Positions 34,039 to 51,070 of a stretch of 64,000 nucleotides of DNA are shown here, one piece after another. Within the stretch, counting starts at the first letter, position 1; every line of letters starts with the position of its first letter. This DNA is from Oculina patagonica (Eukaryota). The translations under genes were made by a program, and so were the position numbers. The stretch spans positions 24,180,001-24,244,000 of the forward strand of contig NC_135769.1 in assembly GCF_052425735.1 (NCBI RefSeq), given 5' to 3'. Below the pieces are notes generated by a model. It made no database searches. It saw nothing but the letters and a program-made list of their open reading frames with translations, and was not told the origin of the DNA.

Positions 34039-34858
34039 TACGTCAACTCTCTTTTTAGAAATGCACGATCTGCGCACGTCGCCGAAAATGTATCAAATAT
34101 ATATTTTTTGTTATTTACTTTCCTCTTTCTAAGAACCCTCGACATGTTGTCTTCGACCGTCATCCCAATCTCCCCACGTCCAAGTAAAAGGATAAAGAGT
34201 CATCCAAAAATTGACTCATGACGTTACGCAGCTAATGTTCACACGCACGCATTTCTCTACGTCTACAATGAACCAAAAATAAAGACACGTCAACTCTCTT
34301 TGTAATGTAGTAAGGCACGACCCGCACACGCGTCCCTCTTAAATCAATAACTTATCACCTCCCCCCTTAGTAAAAGCCAAAATTAACTTCGATTAAGCGG
34401 AGATACACATGTAAAAAGAAATGAAATGTTTTTATAGCCTAATGATTAGTTTATAAATAAATTAACATGAAAACAGAATTTCTGAAGTTCTAAAAATTGC
34501 AACATGGATCGATAAAGCCGAAAGATTTTCACGTAGGGGACCCTGAACGGGTTCACTTCATACGTGCTGACACGCGCAATCGAGTCCACGAGGTAGACGA
34601 TTGAGGAAGCCATATTGGCAAGACGAAGATTTCCTTTCGTATTGGTAAGTAATCATTGCTTTATTATTGTGCTTGTCCTTTGGAGCTCTTCAACATACAA
34701 CGCACACATCAATCATAGCGGCCAAGATAGTCTCACTAAAACGTTTTTTCGAGCTCCAACGTTTCGATCCAGACTTGAGGCTCGCTCGAACAAGAACTGC
34801 TATTGACAATTTGCAAATACAAAGCACAAAAGAATCTCTCATAAAAAAGTTGCTTGAG

Positions 34859-37800
34859 ATGGCTACCACTCACATTAGATCAATCACAGACAGTGCTATC
34901 AAGTTTATAAAGACGAAGCTGTCCTTGTTGGCTCGTAAGTTTACCTTGCTGTTCTCCAAACCACAGGCAGCAACACAAGTGGCTGATCATGCGTTGAATA
35001 CATCGAAAGATAAAGGCAGCATCGAGAGAAAGACAACCTTTTGCTCACTCAGCAATGAAGTCTCAGTACAGGTACAGTATAAAAATGCAATCTTCAGATC
35101 TCGTTACGATATCTATATTAATTTCTGTCAACAAAACGTAAGGCGAAGAAGGAGTAGAGCAGTGTCAAGAATCCCCACAAGCCAAATAAAGCGTGTTATG
35201 CAAAAGAGTAAAAAAGTGGTAATTACTGTGCGGAAACATGTCCGAAAAGTTGTCCCACAGTCATCAAAACTTCATGCGTACTTAAACAAAAAAACCAGTG
35301 CATACTATAGGTTAAATATTGAATTCTGTGGAATTTCTGATCGTAAGCATAAATCAGCTACAAAGCAAAGGTCTAATCACAATAAAAAACATTATGAATC
35401 TACAAATCATTGCTTCATAAAACAACAGAGAATGTTTTTTGTTAATGTACAAACAAGAACACCAAAACACAAGAACTGTGTTGCCTGTGTTTATACTGAT
35501 GAACATGGTTTAAAGAAATTGCAGTGCTATTGTGTACAAATACTGTGGGTGGCTCATCGCACAATATCATTAAGTGGTGATGTAGAGAAGAATCCTGGGC
35601 CTTCCGCTCAGACGAACATTGACAAAAATGACTCATGTGCCATATCAGTCAATTCAGTTTCATTACTTGAATCCAGATTAGCTGAATTTGGTAGAATTCC
35701 AGTTAATGTATTAGGAGATGGGAACTGTTTTTTCCGTGCGGTGTCATGTCAGCTACACAACACTCCCGACAATCATTTTTATATACGCTGTCTTGGAATT
35801 CAGCATCTTGTGCATCACCCTGAGTTGTATATAGAAAGCAACTTCGAACACTCTTGGCAAAACTATGTCAACAATATGGCAAGACAAGGAACATTGGCAG
35901 ATAATATTATAATTCAAGCTGTTGCAAATTCTCTGAATGTCACAATTAATATCATAGAGTCAAATGTAAATTTTTCTCCCATCACTGTTGTACATCCAGT
36001 TAATACTAATGCAGACACAACAAATATTTATATTGGCCACATACAAGAATATCATTATGTGTCTTCAGTGCTAGCCTTGAACTCTAATACCTCTGAAATG
36101 ACAAGTGAGAATAGATTAATCCAAAAATCAGTTAGTTCACGTGAAGACCAAGTAGAACAGTATCAAGAAACACAATTACCACAAAAGGACCATGGAGATC
36201 TTGTCAATAAAGAAGAAGATAATAGGAAGAGAGCAAATGAATCAGAAACAAACAAAGCAGAAAAACGTAAAGTTTCTAAAAGGGAATACATGCGAAAGAA
36301 ACGGGCAAGCCCAGAGTACAGACAAAGGCAAAATACACCAAGAACCAAGAGGTTAAAATTATCAGAAACAGACAAAGCTGAAAAGCGGAAAGCTTCTAAT
36401 AGAGAAAACATGCAGAAGAAACGGGAAAATCCAGAGTACAGACTAAGAGAAAATAGACGAAGAACAGTTGGTTTAGAATGTGATAGTAATATAGTTCTCA
36501 GAGAAAAAATTGTAAATTGTAAAACCTCTGAAAGAGAATTCATACAAACAGAACATGGGGAAGCTGTTAACAAAGTGAAAGATAACCACAAGAGACTAAA
36601 ATTATCTGCTGAAAAGCGGAAAACTTCTAATAGAGAAAACATGCGGAAGAAACGGGAAAATCCAGAGTATAGACAAAGAGAAAATAGACGAAGAACAGTA
36701 AGTTTAGAATGTGATAGTAATATAGTTCTCAGAGAAAAAAATGAAAATTGTAAAACCTCTAAAAGAAAATTTATAGGAAAAAAACATCGGGAAACTGTTA
36801 ACAAAGGGGAGATAACCACAAGAGACTAAAATTATCAGAGGCAGACAAGACTGAAAAGCGCAGACCTTCTAAAATAGAACACATGCAAAAGAAACGAAAA
36901 AAATTGCAACAAATGAAAATACAGAAAGAGACCAATAATCTAAGTACAATAATACCAGAACCTTGCGAAAATTATGCAAATGCTTGCAAATCCATGATAA
37001 GCAATTTTCATGACAATATAAGTTGTGGTCCTGAGTACATATGTACCTGCTGTGATCAATTGTGGTACAAATCTTCAGTTAGAAAATGCAATGCAACCAA
37101 TTATAGCAAATGTCAACAAAAGATTGTCCAGTCTTGTATTACTGGAGTAAAAAGTATCAACAATACTGAATGGATCTGTAATACCTGTCATTTAAATATA
37201 AATCAGGGTAAATTACCGACATGTTCAAAGGCAAATGGCATGGGTTTCCCTGATAAACCAGAAGTTCTTGATTTGACCTCACTAGAAGAAAGGCTTGTAT
37301 CACCACGCATTCCATTCATGCAAATCCGTGAACTTCCAAGAGGTGGTCAGCTGTCAATTCATGGAAATGTAGTTAATGTACCAAGTGATGTCAATTCAAC
37401 TGTGCACGCCCTTCCTAGACATTTCAGTGAGTCACAAACTATCCCAATAAAACTAAAGAGGCGACTAAGCTATAAACACCACTATCAGTTTCAAAACATA
37501 AGACCAAAAAAAGTTTTACAGGCAGCTAAATATCTTGTTAGTACTAGTGAGTTATTTAAAAGTGAAGGCATACAGGTTCAAGATACATGGCAAAACAGTG
37601 CCAGCACACAACCTGAGGAAAATGAAGAATGGCATGAGTTCCAATATAATGTTGAAAATGATTGTGAGAAAGACGTTCAACATAGTGCAAATAATTGTAA
37701 CGACGACAATTTAGGTTGTCTAAATTCTGAAACTATTGATAGTGATGATGACGATGACAATTGGTGTGAAGTTGTTGAACGTCCGTCGGGAGTGACAGAC

Positions 37801-38244
37801 ACCTTGTTACAAGAACCAGAAATAACAGAAAATGGTGATAACATCATAAGCTTTGCACCAGGTGAGGGAAACAAACCTTTGGGTATATTTATGGATAAAG
37901 ATTCAGAATTTCTATCATTTCCCACACTATTCTGTGGAAAACGTAGAGTAGATCACACTAAAAGGAAGGTCCCTGTTTCATATAGCACAGTAGCAAAGTG
38001 GGAATTGAGATGTCAAGACAGAAGAGCAGCACAATCAGTCCCTAATTTGTTTTATAAACTAAAAAAGCTACAAATTAAGCAAATTCAAGACACTGCTTGC
38101 ATTTCTCTTAGGAAATGTAAAACCAAAGGTAAGAAGTACACTGCCGGTGACTTAAAGTCAGAGGATCATGTAAATAAGCTGATACATCTTGATGAAGGTT
38201 TCAGAGTATTAAAAAATTTAAGAGGAAGCCCAGCATATTTTCAA
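34859..38244 (+). pseudogene. Helentron polyprotein N-terminal part: 2A-like motif, OTU protease, basic repeats, Cys-rich region, Rep N-terminus
   Basis: GDVEKNPGP, GDGNCFFRAVS..HYVS (OTU), CTCC/WICNTC, LEERLVSPRIPFMQIRELPRGGQ and LRGSPAYF. A 1-bp deletion near 36809 joins the 720-aa and 475-aa ORFs, as seen by comparing internal repeat copies. Confidence 0.88.
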
Positions 38245-40246
38245 CAAGCAGCTATTTCAAAAAGAAATAGTGTTTCGTTTCCTGATTGCGGAAGGGTAAG
38301 AATAGTGTAACACTTAAGGAGAGGTGGGTTTGGGGTTTACTTTAATTTGGAGAAGGTCCTAGTGTATGTTAAATTTGCCGAATTTATGCACGAGTGCAGA
38401 ATGAAAAGAAGAACTTCATATTCAGTAGTAACTTAAATTCTCATTTTACACCTACTGTCGATTTTATGTAAAGGAGACATAAACTACGTCCTGCTGCAGT
38501 TTGGCTTTCAAGAGTTCAAGTAACACATAAATATTTCTCTTTATAGAAATAGCATATGTCTTTATCTCCAAATTAAGTTAAGTGAAGGGAGCTTGCCTTT
38601 ATCGTTATTACTCATCCAGTGGAAATTAAAATGATTTTTTTTATTTCTGCAGAACACTTTTTTGCTTAAAAATGGCACCCGATAGCATAACTTTGGATGT
38701 TACATGAATGGAAAAATAACTTACAGAAAATATTGAGCGCTCTTCAAAATACATTCTTCCCAAGAAAGAAAGAATAAAGATATTCCTATCAATGTGGGGA
38801 AACATGAAACCACAAGAGTAAAATGCAAGATCAGAGTAATGCAATTAATTTAAATGGTTTATTTTTTGAAACAAACAATGGGTTGTTCCAGAAAAAATCC
38901 ACACCCCCCCGACGGATGGGATTCTGGAAATTCTCGCGGGAGGGGGGGTAAAGGGCTCTGGAAATCCAGGCGGGAGGGGGGGTTGAACCTCAAAAAGTCT
39001 TCTGCAGGGGTCATTTCAACCGATAATTCGAGCGCTTCGAACGTTTAGTTCGGTGACACTTCAGCGCCATCAGATCTTGAAAAAGTCGATTATATTTTTG
39101 TTCATATATTTCTCACCTGACATAAATGATAATCTAAGTTCCTTCACAGGTCTTTTTATAGCAGAAAACGTTGAAGCAAGATACAAAATTAAAGAGAACC
39201 CGTCACAAGATCTCACAACGTTGTTGCAACGAAGATCGTGAAACGCCTGACACATTTCTACTCGCCTGACACATTTCTACTCGTACCCAGACCCAGCGCG
39301 CCACCGTTGTGTAATTTCACGTTAGCTCCGTTGAAATCTTGGTTGTTTGGTGTCATGATAATAAAAAAGAAAAGAAAAACAACTGATTTACTTTCAAACC
39401 TTCGCACTTTGTATTTTTAGTTTTTTTTTTGTTATCTTGGTCTACAATTATCAGCCCAGTCTGCCTACTTCTCGGCTTTTTAAACCTTCAGCACAGATTG
39501 CCCAGCGTCAGCATCTTTGTAACAAGGTTTGCGAAACGTAAATGGAATAAATTTTTTTGCGCTAAATAATTTCTCTCAAGTTTGCTTTGCTTATCATTAT
39601 CCCCTTCCGAGACCTCTGCAGCCGCAGTAGCTTCTGCTTTAACTGTTGCTTATTACTAACGGTCACTGGTCATTAAGTGTTAACCTTTGCCAGAAAAAAA
39701 TGAACACATAATTTTAACGACAAAGACGAGTTTATTTGCAAATATATGGTGTAACAACTATGTATTTAGTGTAACAATAATAAAAAAACAGTCGTTCCTT
39801 ATTATTTTACCCCTATATAATAAATACTATGCTTCTAATATCTTTGTGGGTACGAAATAACGTTGATAATTTGTTCAATTTTGTACTGTAAACAACTTTA
39901 AATCAAAACTTTTAAACAAAAACAACATTTTCGTTAGTAAATAACTGTAACCAAGATACACTTTCTTTCTGTGCTCGCGCGGGCTTACAAAATTATCGTG
40001 TAAAATTATTTCTGACGCAAACTTAGAAAGATATCGAGCTTAAAAATTCATAAACTGGACATCTTTGCATCAAGGTCTTAACTCCTGAACAAAAACAACA
40101 CTTAAATCACCAGCAAATAACTGTAGCCATAATACACTTTCTTGTTGTAATCGCGCTGGCTTTGTAGATTACTGTGTGAAATTATTTCTGACGCGAACTA
40201 AGAAAGATCGATATTAAAAAACACGAACTGTCATTAAAAAATGTCT

Positions 40247-41302
40247 TTAGTCCCAATCATCATCGAACACCTGTCTGGCAATGTCGGCTTCTTCGCCGTT
40301 ATCAATTGCTACTTCGTCAGAGAAGTCTCCGAGCTCCTCTTCAATTTCACTGCTTGCTTGAGCTGCTCGTTTTCCCTTTACCGAAGAAAGCGCCCGGGTT
40401 CGCGAAGTGGTCAGTCCAGCAACCGATTTTCGTAAACGATCCTGTGCCAATTTGAGCTCAGTTAACGAATTCTTCAGTTCTTCTTCTTTCTGCTTGATAC
40501 TCATCTTTATTTGTGGCGAGAGTCCTCGAGCGCGCAGCGCAGTTATTTCCTCGTTTATTGATTTTATTTCCTGGTCTTGCGCTCGTAATAAATTTAAGTT
40601 CTTGCTGACAGTTTTTGCTGATAAAGCCAACTTGTGCCCCTGAATTTCCCGCGACAGAGATTTTGCCAACTCTTCTTCTCGCTCGGCATCTCGGATGCAC
40701 AGTTCGGTGGCATGTATTCGCCAGTGGGTGTCAATGATCCCATGTAGTTCTTGCTTAGAATATCTGGAAAAGCTAGGCGATGAGCACAACTCTTCCGCTT
40801 TCTCGTTCCAGAACCTATAATAATCTTGTCTTCGGTCTGTGGCCTTTTCTATGGTCGATTCTGGGTACAAATACACTCGCCCACGTGCTGCGCTGTAGTT
40901 TGCAGCTGAAGTCGGAGTCGTTCCAGAGGCCTGAAAGTACTTGAAGACGGGCTGTTGACGCAAACGCTTTGGTTTCGGGGTACTTAGTTCGCTCGAAGCC
41001 CTTTTCGCCACCAACTCTGTTTCCTGAAGGTACAGGTTCAGTGAATCATCGTCATCGTGAACGAGGCATTTTCCTAGTGGGACAAAAGTTTCTTGTCCAG
41101 ATGCTACAGGAATACGTGCACACTCTTGCTTTCCAACGGGCTTTGTAAATATGTAATTAAGGGGAAGGAAATCGTTCACAACTTGCAGTACATTGTTTCT
41201 TGTAGCAGCAAGATCGATTTCCTTTTGCTCGTCAGAAATAAAAACTTGACATTTCAGCTCTTCCCCGACAAACACGTTGACTTCGATATGAGATTTCGCC
41301 AT
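40247..41302 (-). CDS. 351-aa accessory protein of the Zator-like element (compact N-terminal domain, helical W-rich domain, coiled coil, acidic tail)
   Basis: Intact intronless ORF from ATG 41302, divergent from the transposase. Heptad-rich C-terminal half and a KPKRLR NLS-like motif. Confidence 0.75.
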   Translation of the reverse strand: MAKSHIEVNVFVGEELKCQVFISDEQKEIDLAATRNNVLQVVNDFLPLNYIFTKPVGKQECARIPVASGQETFVPLGKCLVHDDDDSLNLYLQETELVAKRASSELSTPKPKRLRQQPVFKYFQASGTTPTSAANYSAARGRVYLYPESTIEKATDRRQDYYRFWNEKAEELCSSPSFSRYSKQELHGIIDTHWRIHATELCIRDAEREEELAKSLSREIQGHKLALSAKTVSKNLNLLRAQDQEIKSINEEITALRARGLSPQIKMSIKQKEEELKNSLTELKLAQDRLRKSVAGLTTSRTRALSSVKGKRAAQASSEIEEELGDFSDEVAIDNGEEADIARQVFDDDWD

Positions 41303-42103
41303 GTTCTTTCTCGTAAAATTATTAAAACGCAAAGGTCCGGAAGTGAAAACAAGTAATCCGAGGGTGGTAAAGTGCTGTGTTGTCAAGTCTACTACGACTT
41401 GACCAGCTTTTGACAACTTTATTTTAAACGACCAATTAAAAAGTGAGAAATTATGGTAAAAGAATCTGTCACTTTTTACAAAGCGGCTATGATGGCGGCT
41501 ATGTGTGAAGTCTATTTACAGAGCTTTCAATGGTTCAATGCCCAGATTTTTGTAGTGTCTTTTTTTCGCTTCCTTTTCTACAAAAAGCTGAACACGAATG
41601 TCTTATGAATGCATCAGCGCGCCAGTATTTGATAAACAGTTTATTTAACACAGTTGGATTAACAATAAACAATCACGCAAATACAGTATACTGTAAGTTG
41701 TGATTAAATATGCTCTTTTATTTCCGGTCACTAAATACGTTATACGGAACTGCAAATTAAAGAATTTGTGTTAAAAGAGAGATATGTATATTCTACTTGA
41801 AAAAACGAAAAGGAGACTACCTCGAAAGCTAATTCAAGTAAGGCAAATGGATTTTGTTTATAGCGGTGCTTTGCCGAGTTGTCTGTAGCCATTCTAGTAT
41901 CAGCATGTGACTCAAGGTGACAATAAAACTTGTGAAATTCAAATTTGATGGTTCACGTGCGCACTACGTGGTCGTATGTTCTTAATTCAAGCTAATTGAA
42001 AAGGATCATTTTGTTTTGATTCGCTTAGTCAAGCTACAGTAGGTCTATAATCGTATCGCAACGAATTTTGAGTAGTCAATATTGTAGGTGATCTGTTAGC
42101 GAC

Positions 42104-45100
42104 ATGTCTTCGCGAATTGCTTCGAAAACGACTGTTGTACCATCAGTCATAAGCACTTTGAGTGTACCACAACTGATGTTTCTGGGAAAAACAGAACGCA
42201 CAACAGATCCATCTTTGATGAGAGAAATGCCTCCACTGAACACGTGCCAAAGAGTTCGCTCGGAGTTATATAAAATGCAAGAGGGTGCATCGGATGAAGT
42301 TCAACAACAGTACAAGCCAGTTGCGAGATGGCAGAATTTTGGCACGTTTTCCAGGGATGACATTGCTTATTTCATCCAGCAGTATCAAATTAAGGCTACT
42401 AAAAGGGAAGTGCGAGATGAAGAAGTGTGGTTTGGTCAACTGTTGACCCTGTCCTCTTCAAAAGCGAACAAATCATTCGTATCTAATGTAAGGAGCTTTA
42501 TGGAACACATTTGGATGGCTTCGCCAAATTCTACCGTATTTTCAAGCGGAGTTACAGCAGAACAGCTCAGTAAATTGTGTTGTGATCGTTGGCTATCGTG
42601 TGACATAATCGATGGTGTCTTTGCAATGATTAACCAAAGAAATGACACTCACTATTTTGCAGTTTGTTCTGAAGCATTAATCCACTCAGTGCGAGCTAAA
42701 CAGCGATTGTGTAGTACTATTACTAACAAACTATCACAATTGAAATACATTCATTTCGCTCTAAACGTAAAACGAATGAATGATGGAAAGGTTTTGGTGG
42801 GAAATGGCAATCATTGGACCTACTTCGCTTTTAGTACTTCACTTGATGAACTCTATTACGGCGATAGTCTTGGTTGGAAGTTGCCTTCAAATCTTCTTAC
42901 AGTTATGAAACCAGTGTTTGAAGCACTTTATGCGTTCAGCGGAAAATCCTACACCAAGCCTAGTTATCCGGTCCTTATGCATCAGCCAGGGGCAGCATTC
43001 GGACAGCACAAGTGTGGTGGTTCTTGCTTCAAAGCTTTTCCACTTCAGACATGTGGCTCCGCATGTGGATTGACACCCATTTTCATGGCGGCAATAGCTG
43101 GAAGCAGGGAAGAACTGTGGAAGCATATGATTAAAGAAAGAAATCCTAATCAAAACGTATTGAAAGATGTGAGAAAAATTACGGAAGTAACACGAAATTC
43201 ACCGGTACTAAGAGCAGCTATTATGGGTTGGTTTGTTCGCTCTGCAGTAACGCTTGATGCGTATCTCATCCCTTCGTTTTCTATCTGTAACACAGCGGCG
43301 GACAGTAACACAGCAAGTCCATCAGCTTCTAGCAAAGCACGTCCGTCAGCTACTAGCACAGCAAGTCCGTCAGCCACTAGCAAAGCAAGTCCGTCAGCTA
43401 CTAGCAAAGCAAGTCCGTCAGCTACTAGCAAAGCAAGTCCGTCAGCTACTAGCACAGCAAGTCCGTCAGCTACTAGCACAGCAAGTCCGTCAGCTACTAG
43501 CAAAGCAAGTCCGTCAGCTACTAGCAAAGCAAGTCCGTCAGCTACTAACGAGGCAAGTCCGTCAGCTACTAGCAAAGCAAGTCCGTCAGCCACTAGCAAA
43601 GCAAGTCCGTCAGCTACTAGCACAGCAAGTCCGTCAGCTACTAGCACAGCAAGTCCGTCAGCTACTAGCACAGCAAGTCCGTCAGCTACTAGCAAAGCAA
43701 GTCCGTCAGCTACTAGCACAGCAAGTCCGTCAGCTACTAGCAAAGCAAGTCCGTCAGCTACTAGCGAAGCAAGTCCGTCAGCTACTAGCACAGCAAGTCC
43801 GTCAGCTACTAGCAAAGCAAATCCGTCAGCCACTAGCAAAGCAAGTCCGTCAGCTACTAGCAAAGCAAGTCCGTCAGCTACTAGCAAAGCAAGTCCGTCA
43901 GCTACTAGCACAGCAAGTCCGTCAGCTACTAGCACAGCAAGTCCGTCAGCTACTAGCAAAGCAAGTCCGTCAGCTACTAGCAAAGCAAGTCCGTCAGCTA
44001 CTAGCAAAGCAAGTCCGTCAGCTACTAGCACAGCAAGTCCGTCAGCTACTAGCACAGCAAGTCCGTCAGCTACTAGCAAAGCAAGTCCGTCAGCTACTAG
44101 CAAAGCAAGTCCGTCAGCTACTAGCGAAGCAAGTCCGTCAGCTACTAGCACAGCAAGTCCGTCAGCTACTAGCAAAGCAAGTCCGTCAGCCACTAGCAAA
44201 GCAAGTCCGTCAGCTACTAGCAAAGCAAGTCCGTCAGCTACTAGCAAAGCAAGTCCGTCAGCTACTAGCACAGCAAGTCCGTCAGCTACTAGCACAGCAA
44301 GTCCGTCAGCTACTAGCAAAGCAAGTCCGTCAGCTACTAGCAAAGCAAGTCCGTCAGCTACTAACGAGGCAAGTCCGTCAGCTACTAGCACAGCAAGTCC
44401 GTCAGCTACTAGCAAAGCAAGTCCGTCAGCCACTAGCAAAGCAAGTCCGTCAGCTACTAGCACAGCAAGTCCGTCAGCTACTAGCACAGCAAGTCCGTCA
44501 GCTACTAGCACAGCAAGTCCGTCAGCTACTAGCAAAGCAAGTCCGTCAGCTACTAGCACAGCAAGTCCGTCAGCTACTAGCACAGCAAGTCCGTCAGCTA
44601 CTAGCACAGCAAGTCCGTCAGCTACTAGCAAAGCAAGTCCGTCAGCTACTAGCAAAGCAAGTCCGTCAGCTACTAGCAAAGCAAGTCCGTCAGCTACTAG
44701 CAAAGCAAGTCCGTCAGCTACTAGCACAGCAAGTCCGTCAGCTACTAGCACAGCAAGTCCGTCAGCTACTAGCACAGCAAGTCCGTCAGCTACTAGCACA
44801 GCAAGTCCGTCAGCTACTAGCACAGCAAGTCCGTCAGCTACTAGCAAACCAAATCCGTCAGCTACTAGCACAGCAAGTCCGTCAGCTACTAGCACATCAA
44901 GTCCGTCAGCAACTAGCACAGCAAGTCCGTCAGCTACTAGCAAACCAAGTCCGTCAGCTACTAGCAAACCAAGTCCGTCAGCTACTAGCACAGCAAAATA
45001 TACATCTGGCGAAACGTTACTTCCATTTCCCGGCGTTTCTAAAAGCTTTTACAAGCAGCAAGGAGAAATTTGGGCTAAAAATAATTCGCGCAATTTAGGG

Positions 45101-48100
45101 CGAACGGAAACAATTTGGATCAAGAAAAACGGCGAAACCGTAGGCAAGTGTAGTGAAAGAAAGAATGGAACTCTAGAAGAGAACATTGCAGAACTGGAAA
45201 TTGCCATACGGATCGAGAAAAGACCTAAAAGAGTCGCTGAACTAAAAAGCATTGTGGAAGTGGCCAAGGAAATAATTTCATGCCGTGTGCTCCCTACCCA
45301 CGGAGCTTTTGACCTTTACTGGAAGCAAAAAAATTTTCATCTTGGAACTGAGAATAAAGGATTTTATAGGGCAAGTGACACTTATGACACCTTATCTCAG
45401 CACCTAAATATTGCTCAAGTTATTGTTTCCGGGACAGGGTATTTATGTGAGGCGTATAATACTGACATCGCTAAACTTCAGGAGACATTAACCTTGATGA
45501 CAAAGGAACATTCAAAGAAAGCTTTTTCTTCTGAGGTTCGCAAGCGACTTAACAATTCATTTCAAACAGCCTTAAGCTGTCTTGGCACCAAAAAAGACAG
45601 AGACATTTTTATGGGAATTTTTGCTCATCTGACGAGTGCCACTACTGTAATGCGACTACGGACTCTTCAAAGCCGGAGAGCAATAGTGCGTCAAGCAGTA
45701 AGAACCGATTCCCTTTTCAGAAACTATGAAACAATGAAGATATCAGTCCTCTCTGTTCGCAATGATATGACTAATAAACAGCAACAGGAGTTTGAAAGAA
45801 AGAAACTGCTAAGACTAACTGCAAAATTTTTCAAATCCATATGTGATGGTCGTGGTCGGAGGCTCAAATGCCAAGAATTTCCAGAACTCCCCGCATTGCT
45901 CGAATATGCATTTGGACAACAAGATGTTCTTGCAAGGGGTGGCGGTGGACTACAGGCGCACTCAAAGTTGTACGAGAATACGTTGTACAAAGCAATGGAT
46001 AACAAAACAATAATGCGTGAAGCTCGTGATGTTATTCTCGCATTGGCCAATGAAAACTTCGACGTTAGTCTTTCCTGTCTTTACACTTATACCATGAACT
46101 ATAAAAAAGGCACACATCAAGCAAAGAGGCATCACATTGGGAGAAACGTGAACGCCAACATATCGCTTCACAAGGCGCCAAGCACAGGAGACTTTAAGCA
46201 TCCGGTGAACGCACATTGGTCCACTTCACATGTTAATTACATTTGTGACGAAGCAAATCAGTACAAAAATTCTTGCATGATAGACTCCAAGGATGCCAAG
46301 TGCATTATAAATGGCGAGCTACCTCCTGTTCTCAAACCTGGAAGGACGTGGAAAAGGGTAGAATATCCTGATCACACCTTTGATCAATCGAGGAACAACG
46401 CTGTGACGCCAATAACTCACTTATTCGTAGAATCAAAAGTTTTGCCTTTTAACACGCCTGCTCTCAATTCTGCCAATCTTAATATCCCAGGAACTCAAAC
46501 AGAGGTTAAAGTTACAAGAACAGGAAAAGCCGTGACATTAATAAACTTGTCACTTTATGAGCCAGAAACCGTGCTAAGAGTGTTTAACGAAGTGTTTTAC
46601 CTCATGTCCATACCAGAACTGGATGCTTTTTTTCGTAACCCAGAAACACTGCAGGTCAAGGAAGTTTTAATTTTTGTTGTCGACAACGGACCATCCGAAG
46701 CACCCGCAAGTAACATTGTTCAGATGTTACTTGCAAGACTAGTCAAATTTTTAAATCTGGACAAAGCTGTTCAGCGATCTTTTGCTGAATATTTGAGCAA
46801 ACGGAACTTTGTAGAGCGTTGTCATGCCGCAGAAAACAAAGCCCTGGAAAGGCATGAACCTTTCAGCTCCAAACAAATCCATCCATCTGCAGTTCCTGGA
46901 ACAGAAGCCCACAAAGAAAACATGGAGAAAATGGCGACTGATGTTAAAGTGGCAATAGATGGTACCATGTTTAACAAAGAACCAATTCGCTGCTTCCGTG
47001 GTGTTGGAAATCGTCTTGTTTTCGACGATGACGAGGGCCTCAAGTACTTCTCTTCCCTGTGCAACGATCGCAAGGAATCGTGTGATCTCCGTTACAGTGC
47101 TGTCAAGAATGGTATATATGGTTATCTTGTCCAAAACTGGGGGGTTAAAGATAACTTCACAGGAAGTTACGCTGATGACTACCGCTCCCTGAAGTCTGAC
47201 GCATCGAAGAGCAAATATTCAGTGTCAGTTTTTCGACAAGATGACAAATGGCGTGGAAAAATACAAGAGAAATTAGAAAGGGAGCCGATTCCTGACCTCT
47301 TGAGGTTCGAACAAACCCGGGCTATGCATTACCTTCCGTACGAGGTTCGCAGAGATTTACCTAAAGGAGAATGGGATGGAATCACACAGCTATTTCTCCC
47401 CTCAGATATCCTTGATTTGTCACAGAAGGTATTCTACCCTAAACCAAATCAAGATATTTTATCCACCATTGCATTTTTAGCCTGGATTCCACTGCGTCAG
47501 GCAGAAGAATTTTTTACTTGTGCGAGCAAGGGTGCAGACCTTTTAGCTGAGGACGATGCTTCCAAAGAAATTTGGTCCAAACATCCCCTCTTCGTCGAGA
47601 ATACTCGAGAGGAACTTGTGGCAATCTGTAGCTCAAAAAAACTTCTGGAAACGGGGAAGAAACACGAACTGGTAGCACGTATTGTGAAAGCAACAGAAGG
47701 AGAAAGTGCGTGTACAGGTTCCTGCAACATATACAGTGGTTACCTTTCCGAAGTCCCATCTTCCGTAGCACAGTTGAACAAGCAGCCAGTGCGTTTTCTT
47801 CGAGCAGTTTTAAGATTCCATGGGTATTGTCCATTGGGCACCAAGGATGAACTTATTATTCGAGTGGGATTGCTAAAGGGCGGCCAAATTCAAACTGCGT
47901 TTAGTAGAGAACGAATGGAACTAGTGAAAAGAATTTCAATTCTAAGGGACATCTACAAGCTACTAGCTCAGGAAAAGGAACATAAGATGTATATTTTTAA
48001 GAGTCGTACCTTTGGTTCAGGCGGTGCTGTTCTTTCAACTAGAGACAAGTGTGGTCTCAAGAAAGAAGTTCAGGACGAAAAACTTGAAGTGCAAGGTACC

Positions 48101-48505
48101 GTTAGCGACATCCTTGATCGACTAGAACAAAGTTTGCTAAAGCTCGAGAATGCTGCAGTTGAAAAACTTGGAAAGAGTGTGAAGCCTCGTGAAGAAATGT
48201 CTGCCGTCCCCTCCAAAAGAAGGAAGTACCAGGAGAACGGAGAAGAAGCAACGCCAAGCAGAAAGTCAACCCGGGAAAAACAACAACCAAAGAAATTGCA
48301 AGAAAGCTGGGTGGCAGAAGAGCGAGAACTTATCACACAAGTAGGAGCCAGGATTAATGTGCTTTGGACTGCAAATGACCTTAAAGGAACCAAGTTCAAA
48401 CCAGGCTGGTACGAGGGGGAAGTACAAGAATACGATGACGACAATGATGTAATTCGCGTACTTTACAAAGATGAAGAGATGGTGACATCTTCAAGGACGA
48501 CTTGA
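42104..48505 (+). CDS. 2133-aa Zator-like transposase fusion: Ulp1/C48-like protease + S/T/A/P repeat + DDE + 2 SAP + Tudor-like
   Basis: Protease motifs WLSCDIID, GNHW, GDSLG, QTCGSACG. Zator-like motifs LYTY..GTHQAKRH, HPVNAHW, DSKDAK, PDHTFD, VDNGPSE, NFVERC. SAP motifs at about 47603-47685 and 47770-47866. C-terminal GWYEGEVQEYD. Confidence 0.85.
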   Translation: MSSRIASKTTVVPSVISTLSVPQLMFLGKTERTTDPSLMREMPPLNTCQRVRSELYKMQEGASDEVQQQYKPVARWQNFGTFSRDDIAYFIQQYQIKATKREVRDEEVWFGQLLTLSSSKANKSFVSNVRSFMEHIWMASPNSTVFSSGVTAEQLSKLCCDRWLSCDIIDGVFAMINQRNDTHYFAVCSEALIHSVRAKQRLCSTITNKLSQLKYIHFALNVKRMNDGKVLVGNGNHWTYFAFSTSLDELYYGDSLGWKLPSNLLTVMKPVFEALYAFSGKSYTKPSYPVLMHQPGAAFGQHKCGGSCFKAFPLQTCGSACGLTPIFMAAIAGSREELWKHMIKERNPNQNVLKDVRKITEVTRNSPVLRAAIMGWFVRSAVTLDAYLIPSFSICNTAADSNTASPSASSKARPSATSTASPSATSKASPSATSKASPSATSKASPSATSTASPSATSTASPSATSKASPSATSKASPSATNEASPSATSKASPSATSKASPSATSTASPSATSTASPSATSTASPSATSKASPSATSTASPSATSKASPSATSEASPSATSTASPSATSKANPSATSKASPSATSKASPSATSKASPSATSTASPSATSTASPSATSKASPSATSKASPSATSKASPSATSTASPSATSTASPSATSKASPSATSKASPSATSEASPSATSTASPSATSKASPSATSKASPSATSKASPSATSKASPSATSTASPSATSTASPSATSKASPSATSKASPSATNEASPSATSTASPSATSKASPSATSKASPSATSTASPSATSTASPSATSTASPSATSKASPSATSTASPSATSTASPSATSTASPSATSKASPSATSKASPSATSKASPSATSKASPSATSTASPSATSTASPSATSTASPSATSTASPSATSTASPSATSKPNPSATSTASPSATSTSSPSATSTASPSATSKPSPSATSKPSPSATSTAKYTSGETLLPFPGVSKSFYKQQGEIWAKNNSRNLGRTETIWIKKNGETVGKCSERKNGTLEENIAELEIAIRIEKRPKRVAELKSIVEVAKEIISCRVLPTHGAFDLYWKQKNFHLGTENKGFYRASDTYDTLSQHLNIAQVIVSGTGYLCEAYNTDIAKLQETLTLMTKEHSKKAFSSEVRKRLNNSFQTALSCLGTKKDRDIFMGIFAHLTSATTVMRLRTLQSRRAIVRQAVRTDSLFRNYETMKISVLSVRNDMTNKQQQEFERKKLLRLTAKFFKSICDGRGRRLKCQEFPELPALLEYAFGQQDVLARGGGGLQAHSKLYENTLYKAMDNKTIMREARDVILALANENFDVSLSCLYTYTMNYKKGTHQAKRHHIGRNVNANISLHKAPSTGDFKHPVNAHWSTSHVNYICDEANQYKNSCMIDSKDAKCIINGELPPVLKPGRTWKRVEYPDHTFDQSRNNAVTPITHLFVESKVLPFNTPALNSANLNIPGTQTEVKVTRTGKAVTLINLSLYEPETVLRVFNEVFYLMSIPELDAFFRNPETLQVKEVLIFVVDNGPSEAPASNIVQMLLARLVKFLNLDKAVQRSFAEYLSKRNFVERCHAAENKALERHEPFSSKQIHPSAVPGTEAHKENMEKMATDVKVAIDGTMFNKEPIRCFRGVGNRLVFDDDEGLKYFSSLCNDRKESCDLRYSAVKNGIYGYLVQNWGVKDNFTGSYADDYRSLKSDASKSKYSVSVFRQDDKWRGKIQEKLEREPIPDLLRFEQTRAMHYLPYEVRRDLPKGEWDGITQLFLPSDILDLSQKVFYPKPNQDILSTIAFLAWIPLRQAEEFFTCASKGADLLAEDDASKEIWSKHPLFVENTREELVAICSSKKLLETGKKHELVARIVKATEGESACTGSCNIYSGYLSEVPSSVAQLNKQPVRFLRAVLRFHGYCPLGTKDELIIRVGLLKGGQIQTAFSRERMELVKRISILRDIYKLLAQEKEHKMYIFKSRTFGSGGAVLSTRDKCGLKKEVQDEKLEVQGTVSDILDRLEQSLLKLENAAVEKLGKSVKPREEMSAVPSKRRKYQENGEEATPSRKSTREKQQPKKLQESWVAEERELITQVGARINVLWTANDLKGTKFKPGWYEGEVQEYDDDNDVIRVLYKDEEMVTSSRTT
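43308..44995 (+). repeat. Coding 24-bp minisatellite, about 70 copies (TASPSATS/KASPSATS)
   Basis: Directly visible A(C/A)AGCAAGTCCGTCAGCTACTAGC units. Confidence 0.98.
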
Positions 48506-48900
48506 GCGTTACTGTTGCTTTGGCCGAGGGGTTAATAACCTTAAAGCGGGCAAAAACATATTAATTAGTTGAAACAAACAGGTAGTACAATGGAACCTTA
48601 ACATAACGAAAGGCCGGAATAGAAAATTGTGTAAGCTTTTACGAGGTCTGCTGTATTGAAGTTATTTTTTATATGTTCCTCTAACTGAGAAGAAGAATAT
48701 CGTTCGTTACCGCAGAAGACTTTGTTACACAGAGGTTCGTTATAGAGTTGAGGTTCCGCTGTGTTACAGACTAGAGAAATCTTAGTTTCGTTGTAAATCC
48801 CGCATTTCCCATTTTATCTAGTTGTCAAAACACCACTGCAACCAGTTTCTTCAAGATGTTTATTTTTAAAGTTTATGGAAAAATTTACATCGAACTTAAT

Positions 48901-49102
48901 AGGGGCCTTGCCAGGGTGGTCCCCGAGTCGCTTCTGAATTTCAAAATGCCCGGTGTCGGCTGTTTCATCGGTCATTATAGGCCTTTTTGTCACTTGTCGG
49001 AATTTGGCAAGAAAGGTTATTACTTGTCGCAGTTTCATTTCATGTGCTGTCGCTACTTTTTGGGCCATGTCACTTGTCGGAATTTACCCTGGCATGGCCT
49101 CT
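48901..49102. mobile_element. Small MITE inside the Zator-like element
   Basis: AGGGGCCTTGCCAGGGT / ACCCTGGCATGGCCTCT termini, flanked by TAAT. Confidence 0.55.
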
Positions 49103-51070
49103 TAATAGTTAACAGGAAAACAAAACAAACACGCTTCCCAAATATCTGCAAAAGCCTGGTAACGAATGTTGTTCACAGCGGACTTTTGACACAACGCAAT
49201 GGACGAATCTGAAAGTCATCTTAAGCCGCTTTAAAAATAATTAGTTGAATGTACATGTTAGAAAATTATTTCGTGATTGGGAGCTGTTTCAAGTGCTTTT
49301 GTCTTGGCTACATACTCTTCCGCATAAATTTTGCCTTCCCAATTTACTGACGAAAGCCAAAAAGACTTTGTAACTATGGGCAGTATGGCGGGCATAATAA
49401 CTGAGAAAGCGGTTCACAACGCGAGTTCCAACTTTCCTTCCACTGCAGATTTGAACTTCTGGCTCTTGAAGGTAGGATATGTAAATGAAGTTATCCAGTC
49501 CTAAGTTATAGAAGAATTTGGACGATAAAGAATTAAGTTTAGACTTTTGATATTCGAAAGATTTTGATTTAGAAGTTCTCGATCTTCAGTGGACGGGCAG
49601 ACCTTATGTCTCGAAAAGCAGGCGAAGAGGAATGACTATTTGACTCTTTTATCATATTTTTTACTAATCGTATTACTTTAGGACCATATCTAGCGCAGAG
49701 TAGAATAAAGGGCAACTGATTTTAATGAGCTAAGAATGTAAACACTCGTTCACTTTTTCGTATTTTTGCTCCTGTCTTCTTTTAGTTCCACGCGATAGAA
49801 TTCTTAGCTTAATATTAGCTGATGCTTTAGAAATTAAACAAGAACATCTTCTAGCCGTGATTGTGCATATTTTCTATTAAAATTTAATTAAATTTAAGCA
49901 TAATAATTTTTTCTGGAAATCCAGGCGGGAGGGGGGGTCTTTGGTCTTGGAAATCCAGACAGGAGGGGGGGTCTTGTGCTTCAGGAAATCCAGGTGAGAG
50001 GGGGGTTAAAAAACGACCCCATCCGTCGGGGGGGTGTGGATTTTTTCTGGAATAACCCAATCCTAAAATAAATCAGTTCCATAAATAAAGTGTTTTGTGA
50101 CTACTGATCTCTGATAAAATGCAAAACAACACTTTAATCGAAGATGAAATTATTACCTTTTGACAAAAAGCTTGAGGTATATACTTCTCTGAGTTGATCA
50201 CATGCTCAAATCAAATAAATGCCAAATTCATACAAACCAAAACCCTGGTCGACAAGAACAGAGATAAGCACACTGTTTCGAAGCCATTTCTTCAAAATGA
50301 AATGCCTGTTGTCACTTTACAAAGACACGTAAACAACCAAAGCAAATTAATGTAAAAAGCTACCATACACAGATTTTTAACAAGGATTTTTAATTAAGCA
50401 AAATTCAAGTTTAAAGAAAGTTATATGTTATATATAGTCGTACCAGGATTGTATTTTGCTCGATCCGCGCTGCACGCTCTCCCGGCAAATATAAAATTAT
50501 CTCCACAGAATAAGACACAGCCAAGTTGCTTCTGTTGTCAGTGTAACAGCCTTGCATTGGTAACACTGATAATAACGATTTGCATTTTTGGCGATACTGT
50601 GGAGTTTCGATTAGACCGCGATGGCTTTGAATAATCCAAATAATGTTTATATCATTAATTTAATCTCAGAAATCTGCACCAGCAGTTGCAACGGTAGTTA
50701 ATATTGAGCGTTACATCAACTAAGGAGACGAATTTAGTTCGACACGGCAGTTGCACACCTTGCTATACGATACTGTCCATACAAAATTTAAACTTTGGGC
50801 AGAACTCATCAACTTTCCGTGCAGACTCGAATGTTTTTGCGACGCCGACGTGACACTGATCACGCAAGTCCGGGTACATCCACGCGAAAACCCACGCAAT
50901 TTTGCGTGTATTCGCGCTGTTTGTGACGTCGAAGATGCCGTGCAATTTTCCTGTACAAATAGAATAGGGCAATCTCCCACATTTATACATTCCTCTGTTA
51001 CATGAAGTGAAATTAACTTTGTAAGTCACCTGCAAATATGCACTTCTCTTTGTAGCGCACTTAAGCTCTA

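Follow-up and report, generated by a model that had tools for sequence, protein, structure and literature searches.

The window analysed here, meaning the whole stretch of 64,000 nucleotides, comes from the coral Oculina patagonica (NCBI RefSeq assembly GCF_052425735.1, contig NC_135769.1, positions 24,180,001 to 24,244,000 of the forward strand), and positions given without a locus name are counted from its first letter. We focus on an accessory open reading frame (ORF) on the minus strand, which lies beside a very large transposase gene; together, the two genes make up the coding part of a DNA transposon of the cut-and-paste type, 11.2 kb long and intact. Two-gene transposons of the cut-and-paste type are a known kind, with Harbinger, CACTA, and MuDR as examples. 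From one end to the other, the element is made up of the following parts:

38877-38879, no strand: target-site duplication AAT, left; the same ATT/AAT is found in L056, L058/L059, L064, and the paralogues on contig C4
38880-38920, plus strand: left terminal inverted repeat (TIR), GGGTTGTTCCAG..., where the homology of other species begins, followed by G-rich subterminal repeats to ~38990
40247-41302, minus strand: accessory ORF, 351 aa plus stop, intact and intronless
41303-42103, no strand: divergent spacer of 801 bp, with moderate conservation only beside each gene
42104-48505, plus strand: transposase gene, 2133 aa
~42404-43303, plus strand: N-terminal cysteine-protease-like domain of the transposase, from motifs and a sub-threshold Pfam match
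~43250-45000, plus strand: ASPSATS(K/T) tandem-repeat linker of the transposase
50018-50058, minus strand: right TIR, from the inverted-repeat pair and the end reading
50059-50061, no strand: target-site duplication AAT, right, as read at the ends

The limits of the element were obtained in two ways. An inverted-repeat search returned a 42-nt pair (38879-38920 and 50018-50059) that is 98% complementary; read at the element ends, GGGTTGTTCCAG... begins at 38880 and its complement ends at 50058, with AAT directly outside both, leaving TIRs of 41 nt. The surrounding DNA from five assemblies (including that of Porites evermanni, L059) was also compared with 26-62 kb of the window, and here the homology between species spans 38876/38879 to 50059/50071 and then stops, the flanks being without any match. 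Identity to the copies in other assemblies amounts to 74-81% in non-coding and 85-87% in coding sequence, with one assembly reaching 87-93%. A 3-bp ATT/AAT duplication surrounds each complete copy with both ends readable (L056, L058/L059, and L064), as well as a copy in L064 that internal deletion has reduced to 1.6 kb. Inside both TIRs, at 38920-38990 and 49940-50017, lie G-rich subterminal repeats (GGAAATCCAGGCGGGAGGGGGGG and variants), which are candidate protein-binding sites.

The terminal 131 bp (38880-39010) recur in the Oculina genome in at least 166 candidate copies; the 40 that were scored are 83-98% identical and come from all large contigs. Such end-only copies are probably short non-autonomous derivatives. 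At the protein level, the window copy alone exceeds 50% identity in this genome, both for the accessory protein and for the transposase, and it is therefore the sole member of this element family found intact with both genes in the assembly. With its position within the TIRs, its recurrence in independent copies and lineages, and the purifying selection acting on it (discussed below), the accessory gene has the properties by which the second gene of a two-gene transposon is recognized.

The open frame of the accessory gene runs on the minus strand over 40247-41416 and starts with TTG, and the first ATG stands at 41302, giving a protein of 351 aa. Its parts, together with the untranslated region (UTR) of the transcript, are listed below from the N-terminus onward, with confidence in the structural model given as the predicted local distance difference test score (pLDDT):

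41012-41302, minus strand: residues 1-97, predicted ubiquitin-like (Ubl) beta-grasp domain, without GG after the domain
40892-41011, minus strand: residues 98-137, disordered basic linker (pLDDT <50), net charge +6
40958-40975, minus strand: residues 110-115, KPKRLR, resembling a nuclear localization signal (NLS), within the basic linker
40646-40891, minus strand: residues 138-219, conserved family core consisting of a short helix and a helical hairpin
40349-40645, minus strand: residues 220-318, long antiparallel helices or coiled coil, net charge +11
40250-40348, minus strand: residues 319-351, acidic tail with C-terminal DDDWD, net charge -14
39835-40246, minus strand: 3' UTR of the accessory transcript, from a contig of run X1 spanning 39835-41312

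The initial annotation of this DNA, made from the letters alone, had described an intact and intronless ORF of 351 aa. This description is borne out by the position of the first ATG and by a 1482-nt contig from an RNA-type run that is collinear with 39835-41312. The gene also lies head to head with the transposase, across the 801-bp spacer, and between the TIRs, as had been stated, and the listed protein features could all be retrieved, namely the N-terminal domain (residues 1-97), KPKRLR (110-115), a W-rich segment (~160-196), the helices (223-323), and the acidic tail. The W-rich helical segment, YYRFWNEKAEELC...IIDTHWR, is located inside the core region, whose conserved residues are I151, F164, N166, and W194 and whose net charge over residues 138-219 is -2, i.e., slightly acidic. 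The ORF is not a product of chance, since full-length homologs (80-94% identity) occur in other corals and the family counts 520 representatives. The 3' UTR contains a tandem duplication of ~130-145 nt (39915-40046 and 40079-40221), which, judging from secondary blastn matches, is also found in the copies of other species.

A full-length AlphaFold2 (AF2) model of the protein, built from a 25-sequence alignment, reaches a mean pLDDT of 74. In the head (residues 1-97, pLDDT 67-91), it places strands at 5-12, 16-23, 50-56, 59-66, and 88-94 plus helices, followed by a disordered stretch from residue 98 to ~138 and by helices at 148-153, 157-174, 183-219, 223-258, 263-323, and 335-346. When the head was searched with Foldseek against PDB, solely ubiquitin-like domains came up, at E ~1e-2 (SHANK3 SPN, USP7 Ubl, PI3K ABD, DIX, Raf RBD, UBX, and TBK1). 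For SHANK3 SPN, PI3K ABD, DIX, Raf RBD, and UBX, the match probability is 0.97-1.0 and the target-relative template modeling (TM) score is 0.53-0.65, these scores being given for domain-only chains; for the USP7 Ubl, which sits inside a 662-residue chain, the probability is 1.0 over a 94-column alignment. VIA superimposes head residues 4-99 on the USP7 Ubl with Z 7.1, and shape searches of the BFVD viral library and the ESM Atlas return Ubl families again, including giant-virus Rad23-like proteins. The ubiquitin-like fold that had been surmised for the N-terminus is thus upheld as a predicted structure, with the beta-beta-alpha-beta-beta-(alpha)-beta topology of the class. A profile search of the head against the PDB sequences revealed no Ubl of known structure that is related in sequence.

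The di-glycine of conjugatable modifiers does not follow the Ubl domain in the window protein and is present in 4 of the 68 relatives. Because its Ubl is not followed by GG, the head, as modeled, is an integral, non-conjugatable Ubl-type domain. A role as substrate of the transposase-fused protease, which the initial annotation had considered next to that of partner, is accordingly unlikely in the classical sense.

The core was also folded alone (residues 134-226, 67 sequences), yielding a model with pLDDT 93.9 and a predicted TM score of 0.78, in which an extended strand-like N-terminal segment is followed by one short helix and then by two helices that form a hairpin. No fold match to it was found in Foldseek (best E 2.7), and a VIA comparison with 48,161 chains ended in generic helical arrangements (best Z 6.6). 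The long helices resemble the bundles of BAR, Vipp1, and the TBK1 scaffold at Z 8-10, values too low to carry meaning for folds of this kind. Sequence searches of PDB with the whole-family, core, head, and protease alignments gave coiled-coil noise or nothing, and the accessory protein, used as query in a feature search of the ESM Atlas, led to unnamed clusters only (best score 0.82).

A word search with the accessory protein retrieved full-length proteins at 80-94% identity in other corals, one cluster of them containing CAH3018218.1 of Porites evermanni. In Pfam, the window protein has no match at E<=0.1. When 1.84 billion representatives (clusters at 50% identity, in which family size is expressed here) were searched with a profile, 520 came up at E<=1e-3, including 297 at E<=1e-10. 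Named relatives are from Porites, Desmophyllum, Exaiptasia, an Aurelia-type gene id, and the hemichordate Saccoglossus kowalevskii, so that the family ranges over anthozoans and a hemichordate and probably also a scyphozoan. A second word search with a 68-sequence profile found no additional relatives. In the Oculina genome itself, divergent paralogues (20-36% identity) lie nearly all at 22-41 Mb of contig C4, and the transposase paralogues do likewise. This one 19-Mb stretch of C4 holds almost every copy of the two genes that is old, diverged, or degraded (L002-L055), which suggests a transposon-rich region of low turnover.

The two genes are found together well beyond the window. A transposase homolog adjoins the accessory homolog in the window, L056-L062, L064, three C4 paralogues, L067, L068, L066 (Exaiptasia), and L065 (Saccoglossus). 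Each of the three intact C4 elements possesses TIRs of the kind seen in the window (TG(G/T)G..TTCCAGAAAATATCC...) and an AAT duplication, with both genes enclosed. Across ten elements, the core distances of the accessory protein and of the transposase are tightly correlated (Mantel r 0.98, p 0.0002), the former evolving somewhat faster. The accessory gene is invariably located on the 5' side of the transposase gene, and its orientation is variable: divergent in ten loci representing nine elements (L058 and L059 are one Porites insertion) and co-directional in three elements. Unpaired cases include L063, in which the transposase was lost, and fragments on C4. The co-occurrence that the initial annotation proposed to look for in other copies is therefore real and extends from corals to Saccoglossus, and the pair has either been inherited together since before the cnidarian-bilaterian split or been exchanged together.

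Two loci show further rearrangements of the accessory gene. The C4 element at 40.73 Mb harbors two accessory paralogues in tandem, at L052:3662-4600 (-) and L052:5380-6288 (-), which encode 312 and 302 aa and belong to different subfamilies; both precede an OTU ORF and the transposase gene, which share their strand. In Exaiptasia (L066, GCA_001417965.1, LJWW01000141.1), gene model P0172 joins a CIDE-N exon (Pfam E 3e-13) to the family core. CIDE-N, itself a beta-grasp domain, was considered as a homolog of the family head and rejected (hhalign probability 0.05 against the N-terminal alignment). The fusion reflects either the replacement of a domain or a chimeric annotation, and we do not use it as evidence.

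To quantify selection, the window copy was compared pairwise with four other intact copies by the Nei-Gojobori method, with a one-sided Fisher test. The overall ratio of nonsynonymous to synonymous substitution rates (dN/dS) of the accessory gene is 0.18-0.44, with Fisher p from 4e-4 down to 1e-21, which indicates purifying selection; neutral evolution, named beforehand as an outcome that would speak against a functional gene, is not what was seen. Constraint differs among the segments, as dN/dS in relation to the Porites copy is 0.07 in the core (138-219), ~0.2 in each of the Ubl head, the linker, and the long helices, and ~1 in the tail.

For expression, contigs of four runs from four studies, three of them declared metatranscriptomes and the fourth being X1, were aligned to 39000-43200. 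One contig of 1482 nt corresponds to 39835-41312 with 6 differences and a gap-free ORF, reaching from 10 nt upstream of the ATG to ~410 nt of 3' UTR. Parts of the ORF are also covered by contigs of 93-95% identity, which come from related species, and contigs of the transposase gene begin at 41945 or 42062 and contain its 5' part. No contig in any of the four runs spans 41462-41944 in the middle of the spacer. Because the contigs cover both genes and not the mid-spacer, the data fit divergent transcription of the two genes as separate units, the accessory mRNA being unspliced.

The spacer itself deserves a short comment. An intergenic region of about 800 bp shared by the two genes had been put forward, and this holds for the window copy (801 bp) but not for the family as a whole: among close relatives the spacer measures 612-2004 bp, its centre is little conserved, and three elements are co-directional. 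The shared intergenic region is hence a trait of the lineage rather than of the family, and on the same grounds a conserved bidirectional promoter is not supported. A bacterial-type promoter scan of the spacer is irrelevant to an animal genome.

The transposase brings a protease into the system. Its N-terminal 400 aa contain the motifs NHW, YYGDSLG, and QTCGSACG in this order, of which NHW and YYGDSLG are invariant in all four aligned copies and QTCGSACG is kept in all three copies that reach it. Judging from its sequence, the domain is likely an Ulp1/adenain-like protease (clan CE). It is followed by the repeat linker, in which an eight-residue unit (24-nt period) occurs in ~70 copies and whose length varies between copies and species, and by a large C-terminal part with a SAP match and a weak Tudor-like match.

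Related elements carry a different protease. A hidden Markov model (HMM) from the window protease domain finds all close copies and the nearest C4 paralogue, and gives no match in the other two intact C4 elements. In one of these, c4_225, the first 357 aa of the 1746-aa transposase (L003:2866-3936, plus strand) match Pfam OTU (PF02338) at E 2.3e-7, above the cut-off. Below the cut-off, OTU also comes up at E 3e-4 in an ORF just upstream of the c4_407 transposase (L052:2187-3041, minus strand) and at E 0.004 in another coral assembly (L067:9002-9640, minus strand). All three OTU-type elements (c4_225, c4_407, and L067) retain an accessory gene with an alignable N-terminal domain. The swap between OTU and Ulp1/adenain beside a kept Ubl accessory is circumstantial evidence, read from sequence, that makes a partnership with the protease plausible. 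In L067, the transposase gene of the OTU-type element has been interrupted by a BEL/Pao long terminal repeat (LTR) retrotransposon (L067:3030-8295, with RVT_1, Pao_retrotransp, and Integrase_H2C2).

In terms of classification, the element resembles Zator by its 3-bp A(A/T)T duplication. The combination of a 3-bp duplication and TIRs, a trait of Zator, is found not only in the window copy but also in three further complete copies, a short derivative, and the three paralogues on C4, and Zator-1 of amphioxus has 33-bp TIRs and a 3-bp TAA/TTA duplication (PMC12905397). Zator thus shares the short TIRs and the AT-rich target duplication of 3 bp with the element described here, whereas the size of the transposase (2133 aa), the protease fusion, and the second gene appear in none of the Zator descriptions found; a literature search for a second ORF in Zator-type elements turned up nothing useful. 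PF07592 (DDE_Tnp_ISAZ013) has no match in the transposase or the genome, and the control genomes were silent too. In a language-model feature search (ESM Atlas), the nearest named neighbor of the transposase is an ISAzo13-type cluster (0.80), which we treat as a lead only.

PIF/Harbinger elements are alike in other respects, as they too have two genes inside the TIRs, a 3-bp AT-rich duplication, variable gene orientation, and an accessory protein inherited with the transposase. Their accessory protein is the Myb-like ORF2, whereas the one described here has no Myb/SANT or recognized DNA-binding fold and instead a Ubl head and coiled coil; the transposase, unlike that of PIF/Harbinger, has no DDE_Tnp_4 match. 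The protease, on the other hand, is reminiscent of Ginger1, whose transposases carry either an OTU or an Ulp1 protease (Bao et al. 2010, PMC2836005). In Ginger1, as well as in Ulp1-bearing MULEs and OTU-bearing Helitrons, a ubiquitin/SUMO-type cysteine protease is likewise fused to the transposase, and OTU and Ulp1 alternate between related elements. There, however, an integrase-like transposase has the protease on its C-terminal side, and a Ubl second gene is not described, whereas here the protease is N-terminal and accompanied by a Ubl accessory. The alternation of OTU and Ulp1 is thus not new (Ginger1, PMC2836005); what is new is its occurrence beside a conserved Ubl-bearing partner gene, and a pairing of this accessory family with protease-bearing transposases is not described in the literature searched. 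In structure, the accessory protein is best matched by proteins with integral Ubls that bind to enzymes of the ubiquitin system or regulate them (USP7 HUBL, UBX, Rad23-type Ubl, and TBK1/IKK ULD with helical scaffold), which also combine a beta-grasp lacking a terminal GG, predicted in our case, with long helices after it. The likeness is one of fold and architecture only, with weak matches (Foldseek E ~1e-2, VIA Z ~7) and no sequence similarity.

Taking these observations together, we consider the accessory protein to be, probably, a cofactor or regulator of transposition that acts with the transposase. It would be a trans-acting, nuclear, and self-associating adaptor for assembling or regulating the transposition complex. 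The NLS-like patch of the basic linker could provide nuclear entry, and the long helices could provide self-association or oligomerization, possibly joining two transposase molecules or two element ends. The constrained core (FWN...W) may bind some conserved surface, and the Ubl head may dock either where the fused protease binds ubiquitin/Ubl or on ubiquitin receptors of the host. That the head docks on the N-terminal ubiquitin/Ubl-type cysteine protease of the transposase is a tentative proposal, which we would not call likely. Still more speculative, and in our view rather unlikely, is that the non-cleavable Ubl serves as a dedicated ligand or allosteric switch of this protease, in other words as a private ubiquitin-like module. 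Such a partnership would predate the exchange between OTU and Ulp1/adenain, through which the Ubl partner persisted, and would control the timing of transposase activity through tethering, activating, or auto-processing.

Several points weigh against this reading. The basic linker cluster is found in only 21 of the 68 relatives. The Pfam match of the window protease to Peptidase_C5 (adenain) stays below the cut-off at E 0.04-0.08, and a PDB profile search with its alignment gave zero matches. No protease was recognized in L068, and the typing of proteases leaves out the Saccoglossus and Exaiptasia loci (assembly gap; introns or decay). Moreover, OTU and Ulp1 fusions in Ginger1, MULE, and Helitron elements are described without such an accessory gene, which implies that the protease needs no Ubl partner (PMC2836005). 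A 491-aa relative at L069:10001-11476 (ERZ25066843, P0120) has no transposase homolog within 10 kb on either side and may be a solo or domesticated copy. As for expression, the RNA status of the fourth run (X1) is a guess, the contigs carry no strand or exact ends, and carry-over of DNA is possible.

Three rival explanations were weighed. As a DNA-binding architectural factor (HMG-like or other), it would read the G-rich subterminal repeats and recruit the transposase, like the Myb-like ORF2 of PIF/Harbinger. The repetition of the G-rich motifs at both ends would suit such a role, as would the positive charge of the linker (+6) and the helices (+11), and by eye F, P, and W are spaced in the core much as in an HMG box; the initial annotation had suggested that the W-rich segment could be HMG-box-like. 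HMG_box (PF00505) indeed matches 2 of the 68 relatives weakly (best E 0.002). The window protein itself, however, has no Pfam match, its core is slightly acidic (-2), and a core-only PDB profile search brought up no HMG protein. The confident core model (pLDDT 93.9) has a two-helix hairpin and not the L shape of HMG; neither Foldseek (E 2.7) nor the wide VIA search (Z 6.6) found an HMG or other DNA-binding fold, a miss that does not strictly exclude an L-shaped three-helix fold. The HMG assignment has accordingly been dropped, and we regard a DNA-binding factor of any sort as improbable. A regulator or counter-defence factor, in place of a cofactor, scores no better than improbable either: together with the fused protease, it would disturb the ubiquitin/SUMO silencing or repair of the host, as a Ubl decoy or targeting subunit, or it would be a self-limiting inhibitor of the transposase. 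The Ubl head, the recurrent OTU or CE-like proteases in the partner gene, and the purifying selection fit this too, and Foldseek also brings up proteins that combine a Ubl with helices (Rad23-like and TBK1). Yet nothing points specifically to host targets, and the tight co-divergence with the transposase accords no less well with a direct partner.

Finally, the gene could have been captured from a host and travel along as a passenger, or it could be a host gene, now domesticated, that just happens to lie within an old element. The single full copy in the genome, the L069 relative that has no transposase nearby, and the Exaiptasia gene model joining CIDE-N to the core could be quoted in its favor. 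In every subfamily examined, however, from corals to the hemichordate, the gene adjoins the transposase, it lies within the TIRs where these were found, and it co-diverges with its neighbor; in addition, the flanks are non-syntenic between species and the element ends have many recent copies. A host gene is thus very improbable, and the cofactor or regulator of transposition remains our preferred reading.

For about twenty years, proteases of the Ulp1 and OTU types have been on record from MULE, Ginger1, and Helitron elements, with no role assigned to them (PMC2836005). The element described here is an intact and apparently transcribed two-gene copy, in which a protease-bearing transposase is combined with a conserved protein with a predicted Ubl head, and this ubiquitin-like head may explain the presence of ubiquitin/SUMO-type proteases in such transposases. 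With two clonable genes and defined ends, the question of the role of the protease becomes testable. If the head were indeed a private Ubl module, this would be the first mechanistic role for the protease domains of many eukaryotic transposons. The accessory protein also founds a large family that has no Pfam model and whose members are now annotated as hypothetical host genes; the annotation of transposons in marine invertebrates would benefit if this family were recognized.

Some minor observations concern the element and its surroundings. The whole element, non-coding sequence included, is 74-87% identical to the Porites evermanni copy (L059, CALNXI010000081.1; window 38877-50071), with a synonymous divergence (dS) of 0.49 for the accessory gene. 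If Oculina patagonica and Porites evermanni are as distant as a placement in different major scleractinian clades would make them, horizontal transfer or unusually slow change may be conceivable. Within the element, 39000-39263 is matched by a 773-nt X1 contig (depth 133) that then runs into unrelated sequence, this stretch being common to another abundant sequence. Upstream of the element, at 34667-38310, lie Helentron genes (OTU E 5e-9 and DUF6570 E 1e-18), which represent a second, unrelated OTU-bearing transposon.

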